Origin: Geosiphon pyriformis uo1
Taxonomy: Eukaryota > Fungi > Glomeromycota
DNA: 64,000 nucleotides
Assembly: GCA_016748015.1 (NCBI GenBank)
Contig: JAAOMT010000302.1
Location: 186,001 to 250,000, forward strand
Direction: 5' to 3'
Shown here in pieces: positions 1-8,304 of the stretch (its first letter is position 1; every line of letters begins with the position of its first letter). The translations under genes and the position numbers were made by a program. The notes beneath the pieces were generated by a model that saw only the letters and a list, made by a program, of their open reading frames with translations, ran no database searches and was not told where the DNA came from.

Positions 1-66
1 TCAGTTTAAATGGCACATATAATCGTTTTAATTTGAATTTAGTGGTGATAAAAAAACTCTACATAC

Positions 67-402
67 CTCAACAGCCAATTGTTCATCATCCACCAGCCTA
101 TTCCTAGCATTCAGCCCCACTTTGTCGACTAAATTACCAATCTATGCATCTGTTCTGTATTAGTGCTGAGGCGTATTAGAAGCATAAACATCTATTTGTG
201 AACAGTGGCATGTGAATTAAAGGAGTACTCTAAGAAGAATACGAGGAATATTATCCCTGTTGTTTCTAGGATAAAGTTTCGGAGTTTTATTGAAAGGGTT
301 GATAGTTGATAGTGTGCATCTTATAACTGGAAAAGTTGCCTGGTGGTTCAGGATAGAAGGGGCAAAGTATTGAATGATAAGAGAGTAAGAGCAATAATGT
401 AC
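67..402 (-). pseudogene. Probable exons of a second degraded intron-containing gene of unknown family
   Basis: Minus strand shows ctaatacag|...exon (QMHRLVI*STKWG*MLGIGWWMMNNWLL)...|gtatgt at ~154-67, and an open frame after a tag acceptor at ~402-230 (VHYCSYSLIIQYFAPSILNHQATFPVIR...). The stops are compatible with TGG>TAG and CGA>TGA. Family not recognised. Confidence 0.4.
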
Positions 403-809
403 CTAGAATGTGTGTATACAGTTTTAATAGTAACCCATGGAATAATAACATTTTCTTTGGTAAAGTTTTGATGGCTTGATCTAATCACACTTTTTACAGA
501 TAGTGAAACATCATGATCATTGTATTGATTTTGGATGCCTGTTTCGGAAACAATGGAATGTATGTAAACTGCAAAGACCTTTGCCTTTAAATGATTTGAT
601 GAATTGTCACATTAGGGAATATATAGCATAATAACAGATGTCTTGGTAACCTTTTTATATTCATGTGTCATTCGTAGTTAGCTGAGCATTAAGAGAAGAT
701 CAGGCGCTTATCACAGGGTTTCACTCATTAATAATTTAATTGAATGTTAAACATAAAATAAATATTCAATATTATAAAAACTATAATATCCTTGATCCCT
801 TCCTACTTT

Positions 810-2830
810 TTATTCATTATTTGATATGGACAAAACTATGCAGTTCCAATTTGCATCCCAAAGTGCCTGCTGAAATTCTTTTATATGAGTTCGCATTATT
901 TCCAGTTTAGAAGAGTTTATAAGATAATCAGTGAATAGGTTTTTTAGGTATAAAAGTTGTTATTAGTAGAAGAGGTTATATATAATCTTAATTAAGAGAA
1001 GCACATACTATCAATTATTTTGATAGTTCATCAGCATTATTAAATATTAATCCGTTTTTTCCATGTTGAATTAGCTCATCAAGACTGAATAATAGATTAG
1101 GAAGAATAATAAAATAGTTTTTAATGAATTCCAACTCTTAATTAAATATAAATTCATATTTACCACTTAAAGTTGATTGCACAGACAGGCAAATCACATC
1201 CAAACATATTTACTACCTTCATAGAAAGATTCATTCCTAAAGATGATTTATGAAGAGAAATCCCAAGATTCGCTGATTCTGTGGAATGGTATTATTATGC
1301 CTATCAACATTATAATCAACAAAGAATTAACTTACCTAATATCAAAGGATAGTCTTCAACAGTTAACCATGTTGTCACAACCCTTACATTGGTCAATAAA
1401 AGTCTACTAATATTCCATGTATATATATCTTTCAATGGGGCGTTTTCCATTATCATAAATAATAATTTTGGGAAAGGTTTGGCACCTCCCTTTACCAAGT
1501 TACTTTTAGCAAATTTGTCGCATATCTTGGCTGCTTTCCAATAATATTGAAAAATCTTCATTTGCTGTCCAACTTATACTGCTAATAATGTGTATTGGAC
1601 AATCGGAACAATATTTGGCAGGTTCTTTTGGCAATGGTTTAATTGTTATTAAAGTTGGGTTGCTGGCATTACAAGCAATCCAATAGATTGTAAAGAGATA
1701 ATATCTTCTGATCTGATCCCTTAGTTCTTTCTTAGAAACAAATTAGAAGTTAATATTGAGTCTATTGAAATGAAGTAGGAAAGAAATTATCTTGTGTATT
1801 TCTTCGATGTCTAATCTGCGGAAATGGGTTGGTGGACAATTTTATAAAGTCGAAACTTTGCCACTATAACAATATTAAGATTTTTTTAAAAAGAAATGTT
1901 TCATAATATGAAGAAGACTTATTCGACATCTCAGTTATAAAGAAGCTCTTAATGCAGGACTGCAGTCATGGTGAAGTGGGCTACTGCTCTATGTCCCCAT
2001 ACTCTTTTGCGTCTATAATGAAACAAATTAAAGATCATATCACTTATAAACATAAGACAATATCTTTAAAGCTTTATTAAACAAGCTATTTCACAAATTT
2101 AACTATTCTGCTGTTAGGGCCCAATCGAAGCCCTAGAATAGTATAGCCAAAGTTATGCCAATCAATAATCAGATTTGTTTGCCATTGCCAGCATATGAAT
2201 TGAACAATGAAAAGAGTAGGAATAAAAGGTGGATTCTATATCTGAGATGAAAAGATTGCCACAGTGAATCATGAAATATATTTTTTTGCACAATTAAGTT
2301 CTTGCGCACAAACTATAAATCCTTATAGATTTATCTGGACTATTACGAAATCTGGTGAACTAATCCACCATAAAAGGGTCCAATACAGCAGCAAAATCTG
2401 GGAATGTGTGTAAATCAAAAAAAAACACGTTCGGAAAGAATTCAGACAGGCATCATGAATATGATATATAATGAATTTTTATCTTTGGATTGTCGAATAT
2501 AGAATTAAGAGGTCTTATGCCTGTGTAAAGAATATTAAAGATCTATTGAAAAGATCAAAGGTCCTTATATAATATGGTTATAATATTCTTACCATCATAT
2601 CTCACAAAATAAACAGACTATCCATTTTGTGCAAAACTTAATGCATGATATTGCATTCGAGGAGAGCATCCTATATTTCCTAGTTACATTCTTACCAAAC
2701 TTTCTTTTAAATCGATTTACATTGGACTTACTCTTTTTGATCTTGTTTGTTCTCATGTACAGCCACTTAGCCCCTATTGTATTCCAATTTATGCTTGTTA
2801 AAACCAAATCTAATATTATTGTTATAGGCA
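810..2830 (-). pseudogene. ALG1: ALG1 (chitobiosyldiphosphodolichol beta-1,4-mannosyltransferase, GT33) pseudogene, about 9 exons, introns retained
   Basis: Manual spliced translation of the minus strand gives ALG1 motifs in order: LGNIGCSPRMQYHALS (canonical LGDIGRSPRMQYHALS; exon ends 2593), PDFVIVQ|NPPFIPTL...IIDWHNFGYTILGL (2520-2335, 2235-~2087), TL*NCPP (1864-1791), SSISWTANEDFSILL, WLTVEDYPLIL|[39 protein letters not shown]|LDELIQHGKNGLIF (exons ending 1336, 1278-1164, 1084-1009), then WDANW and a stop at 810-812. Clean GT-AG introns at 2592-2521, 1335-1279 and 1163-1085. Several in-frame stops, frameshifts and GT>AT donors. 5' end approximate. Confidence 0.93.
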
Positions 2831-2859
2831 CATTTTCTAATAGACTTGCTAAATTATCA

Positions 2860-4362
2860 CAATATTAAAACCTTTATTCAAAAAACAAAGTTAATAATGC
2901 TCTTCATAAAGAAATTTGTCAATATTCCAAAAATCACTATGGCACGAAACATGATAATATTGTAGCTTACTTCAATCATAAATATCCAGAACTTCATATT
3001 TTTCATCCAACTGTCTCCAAGATAATTAAAGAGCATACAAAGTAGTTGAATATTGAAATTGATAAAATCTCAGAAAGATGTATTCGACACAAAAGCATTA
3101 AATTTCCATTATTAGACCAAGCTTTAAGTTATTGGGTAGAACAAATAATTGCAGCCATTATTGAATTCAATGATCAACTAATTAAAAAAAAAGGAAAAGA
3201 ATTTGCCAAACTTCTTAGTATACATGAAAATGAAATGCAATTCTCAAATAGATGGGTTCAAAAATTCAAAAAACGAAACCAGTTACGTATTTACCGACTT
3301 CATAGTAAGACAGAAAGTGTATCAACAGAAATTTTACCAGAAAAATGAAGAAAATTAAAAACCATTATATCCGAATTTGATCCTGCTGACATATATAATG
3401 CTAATAAAACAGGATTATTTTTTCGTATGGGACCAAATCAAACACTTGCAAAATGTCAAAATATAGGAAAAAAATTGGTATATTATATTTACCAATTATT
3501 ATCATTATATATTATTGTTATATTAAATTAATTGGGTTTTTTATAGAATAAATCTCAGATTACAATTTTTCTTGGTACAAATTCAACTGGATCTTACAAA
3601 TTACAACCTTTAGTAATTGTACATGCAAAAAATCCAAGATGCTTTAAAGAAATTAATACTTCCAACCTATCTGTGATTTACAAATTCAATTCCAAAGCAT
3701 GGATCCACTCAAATATATGGAAAGCATGGCTTAAATATATAAATGAAGGCTTTCGATCTGTTATAATTCAAAGCTATTGGCAAAAAACGGATATTCTTTT
3801 CTATAATCAAGAATTAGAAATTCAAGAATCCGAAACATCAATTGCTATGGATATATTCAACAATTTACCATCAAATGCACAACAATTGGTCAAAAATTTC
3901 GAAGATTATACTGTAGCAGTTGATGAATTATTGGCAACTAAAAATATTCTTGATGATAATGAAATTGTAGATATGGTTTTAGCCGATGCTCAAATGGAAA
4001 CCAATACAATTAATGATTCGAAAGAAGGATTAGAAGAATCTCCACCTGCTATAATTACAATTACAGAAGCATATGAAGCATTAAAAAAAGTAATTAGATT
4101 TGAAGAGCAATTAGCAGAAGAAAATTTTAATATAGAAAACCAAAATTTACTTAGAAAAAAATTATATGAATATGAAAAAATGAAGGAAAATTCTAAAAAA
4201 CAGGTAACAATTAATCAATATTTTAATAATAATAATAATTTATTGATTTAATAAATAAATATAGTTTATTTAATAATAATTATAAAACTCTATAATAGAA
4301 CACCTCTATAATAGAACATAATTTACATGTTCCAACTGTGTTCTTTTATAGAGGTCTACAAT
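2860..4362 (+). mobile_element. Degenerate pogo/Tigger (Tc1-mariner superfamily) DNA transposon, CENP-B HTH plus DDE_1 transposase
   Basis: HTH region (FPLLDQALSYW...FSNRWVQKFKKRNQL), IYNANKTGLFF (canonical IYNADETGLF), then after an intron at 3478-3546 KSQITIFLGTNSTGSYKLQPLVI...NPRCF...NSKAW. Stops at 3043-3045 and 3346-3348. The middle of the DDE domain is deleted. Acidic tail ends KQVTINQYF. Right-end repeats at 4288-4360; no left TIR found. Confidence 0.88.
4288..4360. repeat. Right terminal/subterminal repeats of the pogo element
   Basis: CTCTATAATAGAACA at 4288-4302 and 4304-4318, with an inverted copy TGTTCTTTTATAGAG at 4339-4353 (14/15) followed by GTCTACAATA. Confidence 0.7.
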
Positions 4363-7110
4363 ATTCCAAATTATATAATATTTAAGAATTTATTAAAATA
4401 TTTAAAAAGTTGTCAAAATATTTAAAAGTTTACCAAAATATTTAATTGTTTATTAAAATAACTTGTAATTTGCTAAAATATATCTTTAGTTTGTCAAAAT
4501 ATTAGTGAAAAAAAGTGCTAAATTTTAGAATAGTATTACAACAAATTGTATAAGAAAAAGCTTTTTTCTTTAAGAGAATGCAAACTTTTTTAATAATTAA
4601 TACTACTATAAAATTCACTAATATTCTGAAATTGATTAGCTACCAATTTTAATAAACATTTAGTCAATTCCAGTTTTGGACAAAAAATATTTCTTTTTTT
4701 ATTTCTTTTATTTTAAATTCTTTTTATTTTTTTATTTTTTATATTATTACATAACTTATAATTAAGTATTTTTGTAAAAATATTAATTTTTACTACAAAA
4801 TAATTACACAAAGTAATTGATATAAAATTGGCCATTTTATTATAAGCTCAATAGTATAAACAATTCAAAGTATAAAAAGATATTTTAAAAATAGATTAGT
4901 TTATTAGAGATTTAATAGTTTTTATTAACGACAGAATTAAACAACAATTTAGTATTAATAACATCAAAAAAAAATGAGAAAATATTTTGGTAAAAATGAC
5001 TTTTTAAAAATTAAAAACAATAAATTACAAAAATAAAAATATTTAATATGTTAATATTTTATATAATACAAATATAAAATTATTATATAAACATAAAATT
5101 TAAAAAACATTTTTTTGCTGTATTTCAAGATTTAATAGATGAGTAAGCCAAGTATTTTTTATTATAATAATAATATTTAACTTTGTTCTTGCTAATTTAA
5201 TCTTGTTATATTGTTGTTAAGAGTTTTTTTAATAATTAAAACCCTTTTAAAAAAAATTATAAAGGTTTTTTTTGAAATTTTATTTCTTTGTTAAAACAAA
5301 ATACAGTTATCTTATCACTTGAATCTTTGAAATATCGAAAAAAAGCTAATTTACTAAGTATTTATAAACATAAACTTATAAATATTTTCTATATTAGAAT
5401 TATTAAAAAGTGAATTTATTGTTTGATTAAATATTGAACATTTTTTAAAATAGAAATTGAATAGATTTAATGATCATATTTTGTTAATAAAACATAAATT
5501 AAGAAAATAAAAATAAATGTTAGTTTAAAAAAAATTTATTAAGCAATAGTTTTTTTATTAGCTTTAATATTAATGGCTTTTATGTTTTTATTAAGCTTTA
5601 ACATACATAAAATATTAATGCTATTAATTATTAAAAACTCTTTTAGATTAATTAAAAAGTAGTAAGAAATTAATATATAATTCTTTAAAAATAATATATA
5701 AAGATATTAAAAAAAGTAATAATTAATTACAATAAGACATTTTAAAAATAATATACTAATAAATCACAAAGCTATTTAATAATTACACAAAAATAAATTA
5801 ATATAAGCTTCTATTGTTTGGCTAATATTAAGTTAACATAAAAACAATTATATTTATATTTATAATTTTTATTTTTTAAAATTTTTATGTTTCTTGTTTT
5901 TTTATCCTTATAAATTCATTTAAGTTTTTATTTTGCTTATGTTTTACAGAAATAGTATGACTTTTGTTAATAGTTTCTTTAGTTAAACTTTCTATTATAT
6001 CTTGAGTTTTGTATTTTATTGTTGTTTTGCACTTTAGCTTAAAAATATGTGGTTAGCAGAAATTTTAATAGAATTGGTCAATTTATTTATGATTATAAAT
6101 ATCAAATAAATCTTTACCATATTTTCCAAATTTTGTTGTTCAATATTAAACCACAGATTAGTGATTTTATGCATCTTTTTATAGTAATTTTTGGAATTTT
6201 AATATGTTGAACAAAATGAAAAGTCCAATTAGCCAACCACATTATAAGATCCAGAAAAAAAACAGCAAAATGTGCTGGCTACAACAAAACAATGTTTGTT
6301 GATCAGGTAGCACGAAGTTGTCTTTATTTTTTATGTAGACCATCGATAGCTGCTTAAGATTTTGCTTACTACAACAAGCATGAAGTTCAAAGAAGAGTTC
6401 GCATAAAGTTGATCTTGACTCAACTAAGCAAAAAACCCACATTGTTTCTGCTAGCCATTAAGAGTACAATAAGAGTATGAACATTAACCTCGAATTGCTC
6501 TTCATTAAATTTTCAAGAATACTTACAGAAAACCCTGTTTTTTTATTGCCCAGTAACATCATGTGATCATCATGTTTGCTTTGTCTGGTTTTGTTGCAGT
6601 GCCCCATATAAAAAATAAACGTTAATATTATGGAAATATTTTTGACTGCTTTAAAAAAAAAGTTTTAAATTCAAGAAATATAATTGAGCAGAAAAAAGTT
6701 AATGCCAATTATTTTTATATTTATAAATTCAGACTGAATTTACTAGAGCAGAGAAAAAAGAAGTATAATAAGTATTTTTAATTTATTTATTTTAGCAACA
6801 CTATCATTGCTACCTATATGTACACTTTCTAGAATTTTCATAGCAATGGAAATCATAAATCAACACCCAAAAGGGGTATGGTAGGTAAACGAAATTCAAA
6901 CTGTTCTAATATTTAAGGACATATGTTTGGTAAGTGTTCATTTCCATTGAAAACATTTTTTGGGAATTTCTCATTTTGTGCTTTTTCATAAATGATGTTC
7001 GGAACATCTTATCACTGCCCATACCATCGAGGGCTTTAGTCCATGTGAATGATTAGCACTTGTGTAAGCTATTTACTAGGCTATTAAAACAAAACTATAT
7101 ACAAAGCTAT

Positions 7111-8304
7111 TTAAAATCCTGCTCGCAAATGACTTTTAAGCATTCTATCGGCCAGAATATATCCTCGCTGTGCCGATTTTACATACCATTTAATGGCCTC
7201 GTGCATATCTTTTGGCGTCCCACTTCCATTTTCATAAAAATTACCCAAACAAAATTGTCCCTCAAAATCTCCGGATGCAGCGGATTTCTGGAAACAATAG
7301 TGAGCACGATGATCATTTTGTTTGGATCCGATCGCCTCACGATAAAACTTTCCGAGTACACACCATGCTTCATCTTTTCCAATATCAGCAGCTTGTTGAT
7401 ACCAATGTAAAGCTAATGAAGCATCTTTTTTGGTTCCAATTCCTTGTTCAAAACATTTTGCTACAGTTAATTGACCTCGCCCATCCCCACCCTTGGCAGA
7501 TTCTAAATACCAATAAAATGCGTTGCAATTTTGATGCTTCCAGGTACCCAGTCCATACCGATGACATTCTCCAACTAAAAATTGTGCACTGATATTGCCA
7601 CCAATCGCCGATTGCCGATACCAATAAAATCCTCGCTTTGCATCTCGTTCGACTCCTGAGCCATGATATAGACAGGAACCAAGGTTCATCATACCAATGG
7701 TATCTCCACCATCGGCTGATTTTCGATACAAGTTGTAGGCTATAGATAAATTTTGTTTGATACCTATCCCCTCACCGTAGCAATATGCAAGTAAACAATG
7801 ACCTCGAGAACTCCCAGCATCTGACGCTCTTTTATACCAGTAAAAAGCGTTTTTTTTATCTTTTTTACAACCAATCCCAGCGAGATAACAACCTGCCAGC
7901 GAAACTTGACCCAAAGCGTCATCTTTTCCAGCGGCCATCTTATATAATGCAAATGCTTTCTCTTTATCAGTCTGAGTTCCAATTCCCAATTCATAAAATA
8001 ATCCAAGCAGACGAGTACAGTGGGGAATACACTGATTTTCGTGCAATAAATCCAAGACCGTTTGTAGATGTTGGTTATTTTTAACGAGAAAGTCTGTTAT
8101 GGTTGTGTGAAGCCTTTTCTCAATTTCCCCACGACCAGCAGCTTTGTTATGTAAGCCATCCAAGAGATCAAGTATTTCATTCTCTTTTGGCAATTCCATA
8201 TTGCTGTACTGATCTTCTATCTCGTCGATAGTGCATTTTTGGTAAAAAATTTTTATAAACTTTCCTAAAATCAAATAAACGTAATCAAAACTGAGTGTTT
8301 CCAT
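7111..8304 (-). CDS. Sel1-like repeat (HCP-like) protein, 397 aa, about 8 repeats, intronless, intact
   Basis: Repeated LG.xY..G.G...D...A..WY..AA..G units (e.g. LGLFYELGIGTQTDKEKAFALYKMAA, LGNFYENGSGTPKDMHEAIKWYVKSA). Uninterrupted ORF with many CpG retained. Confidence 0.93.
   Translation of the reverse strand: METLSFDYVYLILGKFIKIFYQKCTIDEIEDQYSNMELPKENEILDLLDGLHNKAAGRGEIEKRLHTTITDFLVKNNQHLQTVLDLLHENQCIPHCTRLLGLFYELGIGTQTDKEKAFALYKMAAGKDDALGQVSLAGCYLAGIGCKKDKKNAFYWYKRASDAGSSRGHCLLAYCYGEGIGIKQNLSIAYNLYRKSADGGDTIGMMNLGSCLYHGSGVERDAKRGFYWYRQSAIGGNISAQFLVGECHRYGLGTWKHQNCNAFYWYLESAKGGDGRGQLTVAKCFEQGIGTKKDASLALHWYQQAADIGKDEAWCVLGKFYREAIGSKQNDHRAHYCFQKSAASGDFEGQFCLGNFYENGSGTPKDMHEAIKWYVKSAQRGYILADRMLKSHLRAGF

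Follow-up and report, generated by a model that had tools for sequence, protein, structure and literature searches.

The stretch of DNA studied here, a window of 64,000 nucleotides from the glomeromycete Geosiphon pyriformis uo1 (contig JAAOMT010000302.1, positions 186,001 to 250,000), contains near its left end a dead fragment of ALG1, the gene for a β-1,4-mannosyltransferase, and this fragment is the cargo of a pogo/Tc5 transposon. The window copy, on contig C687, was designated psi1, and the dead copies on contigs C667 and C718 were designated psi2 and psi3. All genome searches covered the assembly of 128.3 Mb in 792 contigs. The features are listed below in window positions, negative positions lying before the first nucleotide of the window.

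1-809, no strand: downstream flank of the ALG1 fragment, consisting of cargo DNA whose origin is unknown and belonging to a 3.6-kb insert that starts at about L023:9103 (window -898).
810-2674, minus strand: dead ALG1 (β-1,4-mannosyltransferase) fragment psi1 with 8 introns, 5' end missing, delimited by alignment to the intact gene on C641.
2675-2694, no strand: junction of cargo and transposon; local alignment to a canonical copy places the restart of the canonical element (position ~212) at about 2689-2695.
2695-4357, plus strand: body and 3' end of a pogo/Tc5-type transposon (from element position ~212 onward), sharing about 91% identity with canonical copies.
4358-5112, no strand: copy of repeat R, about 750 nucleotides (nt) with a guanine plus cytosine content (GC) of about 0.14; matched at least 99 times in the genome, in many cases with the match beginning exactly at 4358-4361.

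The exon equivalents of psi1 were located at 2593-2674, 2335-2520, 2087-2235, 1923-2012, 1791-1863, 1336-1730, 1164-1278, 1009-1084 and 810-941. All eight introns occupied positions identical to those of the C641 gene, which marks psi1 as an unprocessed copy made at the DNA level. The initial annotation had extended the ALG1 copy from 810 to 2830; this held for 810-2674, whereas 2675-2830 consists of the junction followed by the pogo-type transposon. The fragment begins at about codon 61, and without the first ~60 codons it does not provide a complete open reading frame (ORF) with an N-terminal membrane segment. Beyond the transposon, no remainder of ALG1 exon 1 was found by purine/pyrimidine-coded local alignment (score 95 against a shuffle mean of 101), and Pfam returned no match for single exons of either the intact or the dead ALG1.

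Seven premature stops were present in psi1 (2618-2620, 2453-2455, 2012/2088, 1949-1951, 1931-1933, 1842-1844 and 1015-1017). Four were derived from TGG (to TAG, TGA or TAA), two from CAA to TAA and one from TAC to TAA by a transversion; six of the seven were explicable by G>A or C>T alone. Three splice donors read AT in place of GT (2333-2334, 1921-1922 and 1789-1790), as the initial annotation had reported, and its examples of lesions (residue changes, tryptophan codons turned into TAG and TGA, a glutamine codon turned into TAA) were all present. Psi1 also carried four frameshifts in common with the C667 copy. Assembly error had been named as a possible cause of these lesions, and an independent Logan contig from a public run (X1, probably the sample behind the genome assembly) showed 0 differences to window 1-2727 at a single-copy depth of 84; the lesions of psi1 are therefore not assembly errors. 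No RNA run was found to contain the region. Psi1 is a DNA-level, intron-retaining dead ALG1 copy whose disabling lesions are mostly C>T/G>A.

The canonical pogo/Tc5 element is 2.27 kb long and present in dozens of copies. In three canonical copies its ends, CAGTCAGACC... and ...GGTCTGACTG, formed terminal inverted repeats flanked by TA. The transposase domains were represented by HTH_Tnp_Tc5 (PF03221) at window 3046-3348 and by DDE_1 (PF03184) in a canonical copy. Homology to more than 35 genome copies stopped sharply at 2695, and the first ~215 nt of the element, including the 5' inverted repeat, were found at window -1148 to -898 (L023:8852-9102), in the same orientation, in all three psi copies. 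The transposon was split at a single point (element position ~215 / ~212) by a contiguous 3.6-kb insert made up of 1.7 kb of flank and the ALG1 fragment, and the same cargo lay between both element ends in C687, C667 and C718. The 1.7 kb of ALG1-flanking cargo was unique, being matched only in these three copies; it gave no coding signal, and tblastx revealed no synteny with the region that follows the resident ALG1 on C641. The transposon part at 2695-4357 carried a 365-bp internal deletion at 3756/3758, and its 3' inverted repeat lacked ~5 nt at the end.

Homology among psi1, psi2 and psi3 extended from about window -1150 to 5112 when BLAST was run with strict scoring (permissive scoring produced AT-rich noise). 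The unit occupied C687:184.8-191.1 kb for psi1 and C718:853.6-856.9 kb for psi3. The left boundary of this unit was the 5' inverted repeat after TA in all three copies, with unrelated flanks, and repeat R was present in all three up to about 5112. Repeat R occurred at very many loci, often in arrays of sub-units of roughly 190-230 nt, and had a sharp terminus at 4358. It directly abutted the pogo 3' end in psi1 and stood about 440 nt from it in psi2; in psi3 that end was deleted. Given these boundaries, the composite may have spread either as a transposon or within segmental duplications.

The intact ALG1 expected elsewhere in the assembly was found on C641 (locus L020, 4067-6176), with 9 exons, 498 codons and a complete ORF that includes the N-terminal membrane segment. 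Besides this intact gene, ALG1 was represented in the assembly by psi1, psi2 and psi3 and by a single partial copy on C656. A word search with exon 6 of the C641 gene gave 28 matches, several of them named β-1,4-mannosyltransferase, the best being from Gigaspora margarita (60%), and the atlas lead for the gene was chitobiosyldiphosphodolichol beta-mannosyltransferase; these matches identify the resident gene as ALG1, the chitobiosyldiphosphodolichol β-1,4-mannosyltransferase of family GT33. A PDB sequence search with the same exon gave no match. Intron 8 of the resident gene (L020:5967-6044; C641:89966-90043) showed an apparent GC-AG splice pair with the donor GCAAGT; no GT donor yielded an open frame there, and the dead copies carry GT at this place.

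The differences between the intact gene and psi1 were distributed as follows.

Exons: 1313 sites, 163 C>T/G>A, 99 reverse transitions, 195 transversions, transition/transversion ratio (Ts/Tv) 1.34.
Introns: 538 sites, 43 C>T/G>A, 58 reverse transitions, 156 transversions, Ts/Tv 0.65.
Codon positions 1+2: 876 sites, 101 C>T/G>A, 49 reverse transitions, 71 transversions.
Codon position 3: 437 sites, 62 C>T/G>A, 50 reverse transitions, 124 transversions.

In the initial annotation, most departures from invariant residues of ALG1 were taken to be transitions toward A/T, and an ordinary Ts/Tv against the intact paralogue was to count against hypermutation. C>T/G>A made up only 36% of the 457 exon differences, and by that same standard the spectrum was ordinary, as most of the divergence is old. 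Third positions were 46% identical between psi1 and the resident gene, with transversions at 28% of them. The proportion of synonymous differences (pS) was 0.77, which is saturated, and that of nonsynonymous differences (pN) was 0.23 (Nei-Gojobori); the ratio of nonsynonymous to synonymous divergence (dN/dS), calculated like the tree on joined codons, was far below 1. Identity was 62% for the protein and 52% for the introns. The GC of exons was 0.394 in the intact gene, 0.356 in the inferred psi ancestor and 0.339 in psi1.

Saturation of the synonymous sites together with a dN/dS far below 1 indicates that the source of psi belonged to a separate ALG1 lineage that remained functional over a long period. 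The tree, built on the exon 6-9 region, placed the reconstructed psi ancestor as sister to the resident gene (support 97/93), apart from Gigaspora and the other sampled sequences. Judged by these comparisons, psi1 is not a recent duplicate of the resident ALG1. The view of psi1 as a duplicate of a host gene therefore stood as to the DNA-level copying and the retained introns, but not as to descent from the resident ALG1 (pS 0.77, protein 62%). As the source lineage, one may consider either an old paralogue that the assembly now lacks or a gene that belonged to a related fungus.

A far heavier load was carried by the sister copies. The GC of the ALG1 part was 0.349 in the resident gene on C641, 0.307 in psi1 on C687, 0.109 in psi2 on C667 and 0.098 in psi3 on C718. 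From psi1 to psi2, 354 C>T/G>A changes were counted against 27 reverse changes and 47 transversions, so that C>T/G>A accounted for 83% of the differences. At 582 sites with C or G kept in psi1, psi2 had lost 70% and psi3 65%; 287 sites were lost in both, against 264 expected under independence, which indicates that psi2 and psi3 were mutated independently. The loss of G/C was alike across the unit (67-69% in the unknown flank, 65-72% in the ALG1 part and 47-61% in the transposon part), and in the C667 copy 67% of G/C was gone from the equivalent of window 1-809. All contexts were hit, with a 5' pyrimidine preferred (.71-.78 at TpC/CpC against.51-.57 at ApC/GpC). Psi2 (L011 and L024, C667:722893-737187) contained at least 4 nested insertions of 0.4-2.3 kb, now with a GC of 0.1-0.2; psi1 contained none and lay 4.3 kb from an intact Sel1-repeat gene.

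In psi1 itself, the G/C loss since the copies separated amounted to 11-19% at sites where a sister keeps C or G, and transversions between the psi copies amounted to about 2.4%. The C>T layer of psi1 comprised roughly 60-70 late events over about 400 old ordinary differences. The loss specific to psi1 was.42 at CpG and.15-.24 elsewhere. At G/C sites invariant in six other members of the transposon family, the transposon part of psi1 had lost 9% and that of psi2 55%, the ordinary members having lost 2-10%. The excess of C>T/G>A over reverse transitions at constrained positions (101 against 49) was consistent with the observed lesions. A three-taxon parsimony with the intact gene as outgroup yielded 106 apparent T>C changes in psi1 and was rejected as homoplasy, because the C>T changes of psi2 converge on old T's of the distant outgroup; it was replaced by comparisons between sister copies and by family-invariant sites. 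The verdict of the initial annotation that the gene was destroyed by hypermutation thus applied to six of the seven stops and the three donors, but psi1 is the least mutated copy, having lost only 11-19% of G/C against 65-70% in its sisters, and four shared frameshifts and a 5' truncation disable it besides.

A second comparison was provided by a 14.7-kb stretch of C641 (74.7-89.4 kb) that is duplicated on C656. In its left part, which carries a class-3-lipase-like gene, the two copies shared 89-99% identity, and the changes were balanced. Beyond about C641 81.74 kb and as far as the end of the stretch, each 500 bp of the C656 copy contained 43-130 C>T/G>A but 2-15 reverse changes, transversions being unchanged. 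The mutated domain of C656 lay at 1174.4-1182 kb. In the last 5.35 kb, 599 C>T/G>A, 82 reverse changes and 179 transversions were counted (C>T/G>A 70% of the differences), and the context rates were.54 at CpG,.35 at CpC,.28 at CpA and.23 at CpT. At the resolution of 500-bp bins, the onset of the loss coincided with the left end of a transposon of a family with at least 40 copies, at about C641 81.6-81.7 kb. On C641 this transposon extends from about 81.6 to 87.8 kb and ends 260 bp before the start codon of the resident ALG1. Polarisation with five other family copies assigned 7 C>T, 10 T>C and 11 transversions after the duplication to the C641 transposon copy and 111, 11 and 36, respectively, to the C656 copy. 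Possible C>T changes in ALG1 itself numbered 7 exonic and 3 intronic in the resident gene and 110 and 20 in the C656 piece.

The C656 ALG1 piece (promoter to exon 6, 1.6 kb) ends exactly at the terminus of another high-copy transposon; with a transposon on each side, the ALG1 DNA of C656 is sandwiched between two transposons. The 3' part of ALG1 was not found within 24 kb on that side (C656:1150000-1174413). Pfam gave no match for the ORFs of either the transposon at the onset or the one truncating the C656 ALG1. The truncating element (L021:1-4414, C656:1170000-1174413) had at least 100 genome matches and cuts ALG1 inside exon 6. The unclassified transposon upstream of the resident ALG1 (L032/L020, C641:81600-87800) had a GC of 0.34-0.41 and no C>T excess. 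Tandem class-3-lipase-like ORFs with the motif LITFGQPRIGN were located at C641:74900-80100 (L032) and C656:1183100-1184600; a stretch of about 1.1 kb in the lipase region was 98% identical between C641 and C656, perhaps as a result of gene conversion or of a more recent event. Undetermined bases (N) filled C641:79057-79238.

The initial annotation had set a homology-triggered process, which would leave a C>T excess in the intact copy, against a position-triggered one, which would leave none. No excess was found in the resident gene in spite of its duplicate on C656, which argues that the trigger is set by position rather than by homology. The further claim that the process is not limited to transposons found no support here, since psi1 is transposon cargo and the C656 ALG1 piece lies between two transposons. 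What survives is a weaker statement, namely that the mutator is indifferent to the origin of a sequence inside a transposon-bounded domain.

We consider it probable that psi1 is a passenger ALG1 piece of a second lineage inside a pogo/Tc5 element and that it decayed with this element under a one-way C>T/G>A process. By this account, a 3.6-kb chromosome piece comprising most of an ALG1-type gene and 1.7 kb of its downstream flank would have been inserted about 215 nt inside a pogo/Tc5 element, and its source would have been a second ALG1 lineage kept under purifying selection until synonymous saturation. The unit would then have come to be present at the three loci on C687, C667 and C718. After the capture, frameshifts would have accumulated, and a one-way C>T/G>A process would have acted in all contexts, fastest at CpG and with a 5' pyrimidine preferred, lightly in psi1 and to near saturation in psi2 and psi3. 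The target of the mutator may be silenced chromatin domains with transposons in them rather than duplicated sequence in itself, and host DNA, if captured or sandwiched, would be mutated as a bystander. As for the chemistry, the most economical guess would be that cytosine, methylated or not, is deaminated in silenced chromatin. On a wider scale, the data may point to a glomeromycete C-to-T genome defence aimed by locus or chromatin domain, which would erase DNA in transposon-bounded silent domains including pieces of host genes, stop at a transposon edge facing an active gene, and be able to spare an identical transposon copy for an equally long time; this generalization is put forward tentatively, as a possibility that we do not quite favor over its negation.

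Other origins of psi1 have to be weighed against the passenger model. The identical intron positions, the mostly G>A/C>T disabling lesions and the massive C>T mutation of the sister copies would all be expected if psi1 were a recent DNA-level duplicate of the resident essential ALG1 destroyed by homology-triggered mutation resembling repeat-induced point mutation (RIP). This explanation is hardly tenable in view of the synonymous saturation, the transversions at 28% of third positions, the exon Ts/Tv of 1.34 and the dN/dS far below 1, and the psi ancestor already had a GC of 0.356 against 0.394 in the intact exons. In addition, although C656 holds a duplicate that is truly young, neither the resident gene nor the neighbouring transposon copy shows a C>T excess, and part of the C641/C656 duplication is unmutated in both copies. 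It is also decidedly unlikely that psi1 is a relic in situ, that is, an old ALG1 paralogue that died in place, with transposons inserted on both sides and the further copies made by segmental duplication. Segmental duplications of 14.7 kb do occur in the genome, and the right boundary of the unit does not lie at an inverted repeat of the transposon, as such a relic would allow; however, the transposon itself is split at a single point with collinear halves, and ALG1 and its flank are contiguous between them. The left boundary, exactly the 5' inverted repeat after TA in all three copies with unrelated flanks, and the lack of an exon 1 remainder beyond the transposon also speak against it.

A horizontal origin, in which the composite gained its ALG1 cargo (the donor's single ALG1) in another glomeromycete and then entered this genome, was judged unlikely. 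It would account for the absence of an intact source gene from the 128-Mb assembly and for the combination of young transposon parts (0.44% transversions per site against family-invariant sites) with a cargo anciently diverged from the resident gene, and Tc1/mariner-pogo elements are known for horizontal transfer. Yet the transposon parts of the composite are ~91% identical to resident family members, as those are among themselves, so the capture may have been local; among the sequences sampled, psi is grouped with the resident gene only, and the loss of a redundant paralogue is an ordinary event. Also unlikely, if slightly less so, is the explanation that no special mutator acted on psi1, its lesions being the result of AT-biased mutation and spontaneous deamination of methylated CpG in an old pseudogene. 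Exon GC fell only slightly (0.356 to 0.339), CpG sites suffered most from the loss specific to psi1 (.42 against.15-.24), and the load of psi1 equals that of ordinary members of the transposon family. These observations have to be set against a non-CpG cytosine loss of about 15% compared with transversions of about 1.2% per site and lineage, against six of seven stops by transition despite many transversion routes to a stop in an AT-rich gene, and against the 65-70% loss reached by the same sequence at two other loci.

Several points weigh against the passenger model and the targeting attached to it. The C>T layer of psi1 is thin and weighted toward CpG (.42 against.15), and part of it may be ordinary decay of methylated CpG. 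The light load of psi1 beside the heavy loads of psi2 and psi3 is not explained by the model. The right edge of the unit is not at the 3' inverted repeat but continues through repeat R to about 5112, which means that the unit may have spread by segmental duplication and not by transposition. No intact member of the psi lineage of ALG1 was found in the assembly, nor did a word search yield a candidate source when the longest open piece of psi1 served as the query. Beside the observed anatomy, ages, spectra, one-sidedness and domain boundaries, we infer the targeting of silent domains from sequence comparison.

In the neighbourhood of the composite, an intact ORF of 397 amino acids with six Sel1 repeats (Pfam E 1.7e-56; GC 0.40) was located on the minus strand at window 7111-8304, 2.7 kb from the 3' end of the composite transposon (4357) and 2 kb past repeat R, with a GC of 0.14-0.18 in between.

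The closest known cases are found in ascomycetes. In Pseudocercospora fijiensis, histone H3 was captured by a hAT element and all copies but the original were inactivated by RIP, and in Zymoseptoria tritici a DNA methyltransferase gene was amplified and its copies were inactivated by RIP (PMC6710886). As in these cases, a cut-and-paste transposon acquired part of a host gene as DNA; the fragment occurs at several loci and was killed there largely by C>T/G>A, the original being intact. Unlike them, the present case concerns a glomeromycete host, only three copies and a cargo that does not come from the resident gene; the loads are unequal (11-19% against 65-70%), the resident gene lacks a mutation signature, and the context is CpG or pyrimidine-C, not CpA. 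With canonical RIP of Neurospora crassa and other Pezizomycotina, the process shares one-way C>T/G>A change, the removal of most cytosines where it is heavy, and AT-rich deserts beside intact genes. Canonical RIP is triggered by duplication, normally mutates both copies and prefers CpA. Here, only one copy of a young 14.7-kb duplication was mutated, part of it was spared in both copies, the boundary lay at a transposon edge, and CpG and a 5' pyrimidine were preferred; of the features of canonical RIP, transition dominance between repeat copies was found, and CpA preference, mutation of both copies and a duplication trigger were not.

A kingdom-wide survey found RIP-like signatures to be enriched only in ascomycetes (PMC12543289), and RIP signatures were not detected in Gigaspora margarita or Mucoromycotina (bioRxiv 10.1101/2021.03.30.436303). 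Papers describing such a process in this fungus were not found. RIP can leak into single-copy DNA beside repeats in the AT-isochores of Leptosphaeria maculans (PMC3105345). Similarly, DNA that does not belong to transposons was mutated here, namely the captured ALG1 fragment with 1.7 kb of flank and, on C656, the ALG1 piece of 1.6 kb. In contrast to such leakage, the spill-over was as strong as in the transposon, ran for at least 1.6-3.6 kb and stopped, within 500-bp bins, at the transposon end facing the intact lipase gene. The composite also resembles Pack-type transposons (Pack-MULEs) in that an intron-bearing gene fragment lies between terminal inverted repeats and the same cargo is found in every copy. 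It differs from them in keeping its own dead transposase gene and in having one contiguous 3.6-kb piece at one point without loss of transposon sequence; moreover, the right boundary is not at an inverted repeat, so that transposition is a possible route for the composite rather than an established one.

The locus itself is ordinary transposon cargo, and its value lies in the matched controls that it offers for the targeting of C>T mutation. The same 6-kb sequence stands at three loci with G/C losses of 11-19%, 65% and 70%; in a young duplicate of 14.7 kb, mutation is confined to one side and begins at a transposon edge; and an essential resident gene lies 260 bp from an unmutated copy of the same transposon. 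Together, these three comparisons argue for targeting that is epigenetic or positional and not based on homology. A question treated as closed by the published surveys, in which RIP-like mutation belongs to ascomycetes alone, now has internal controls. Pseudogenes of this genome that seem to be hit by the transposon mutator should be checked first for being transposon cargo. The cargo is also the only record in the assembly of a second ALG1 lineage, which would be either a lost paralogue or the trace of a horizontal transposon transfer. If the targeting is positional, the trigger of the process in this glomeromycete would be testable by a methylome or chromatin map of a few loci.

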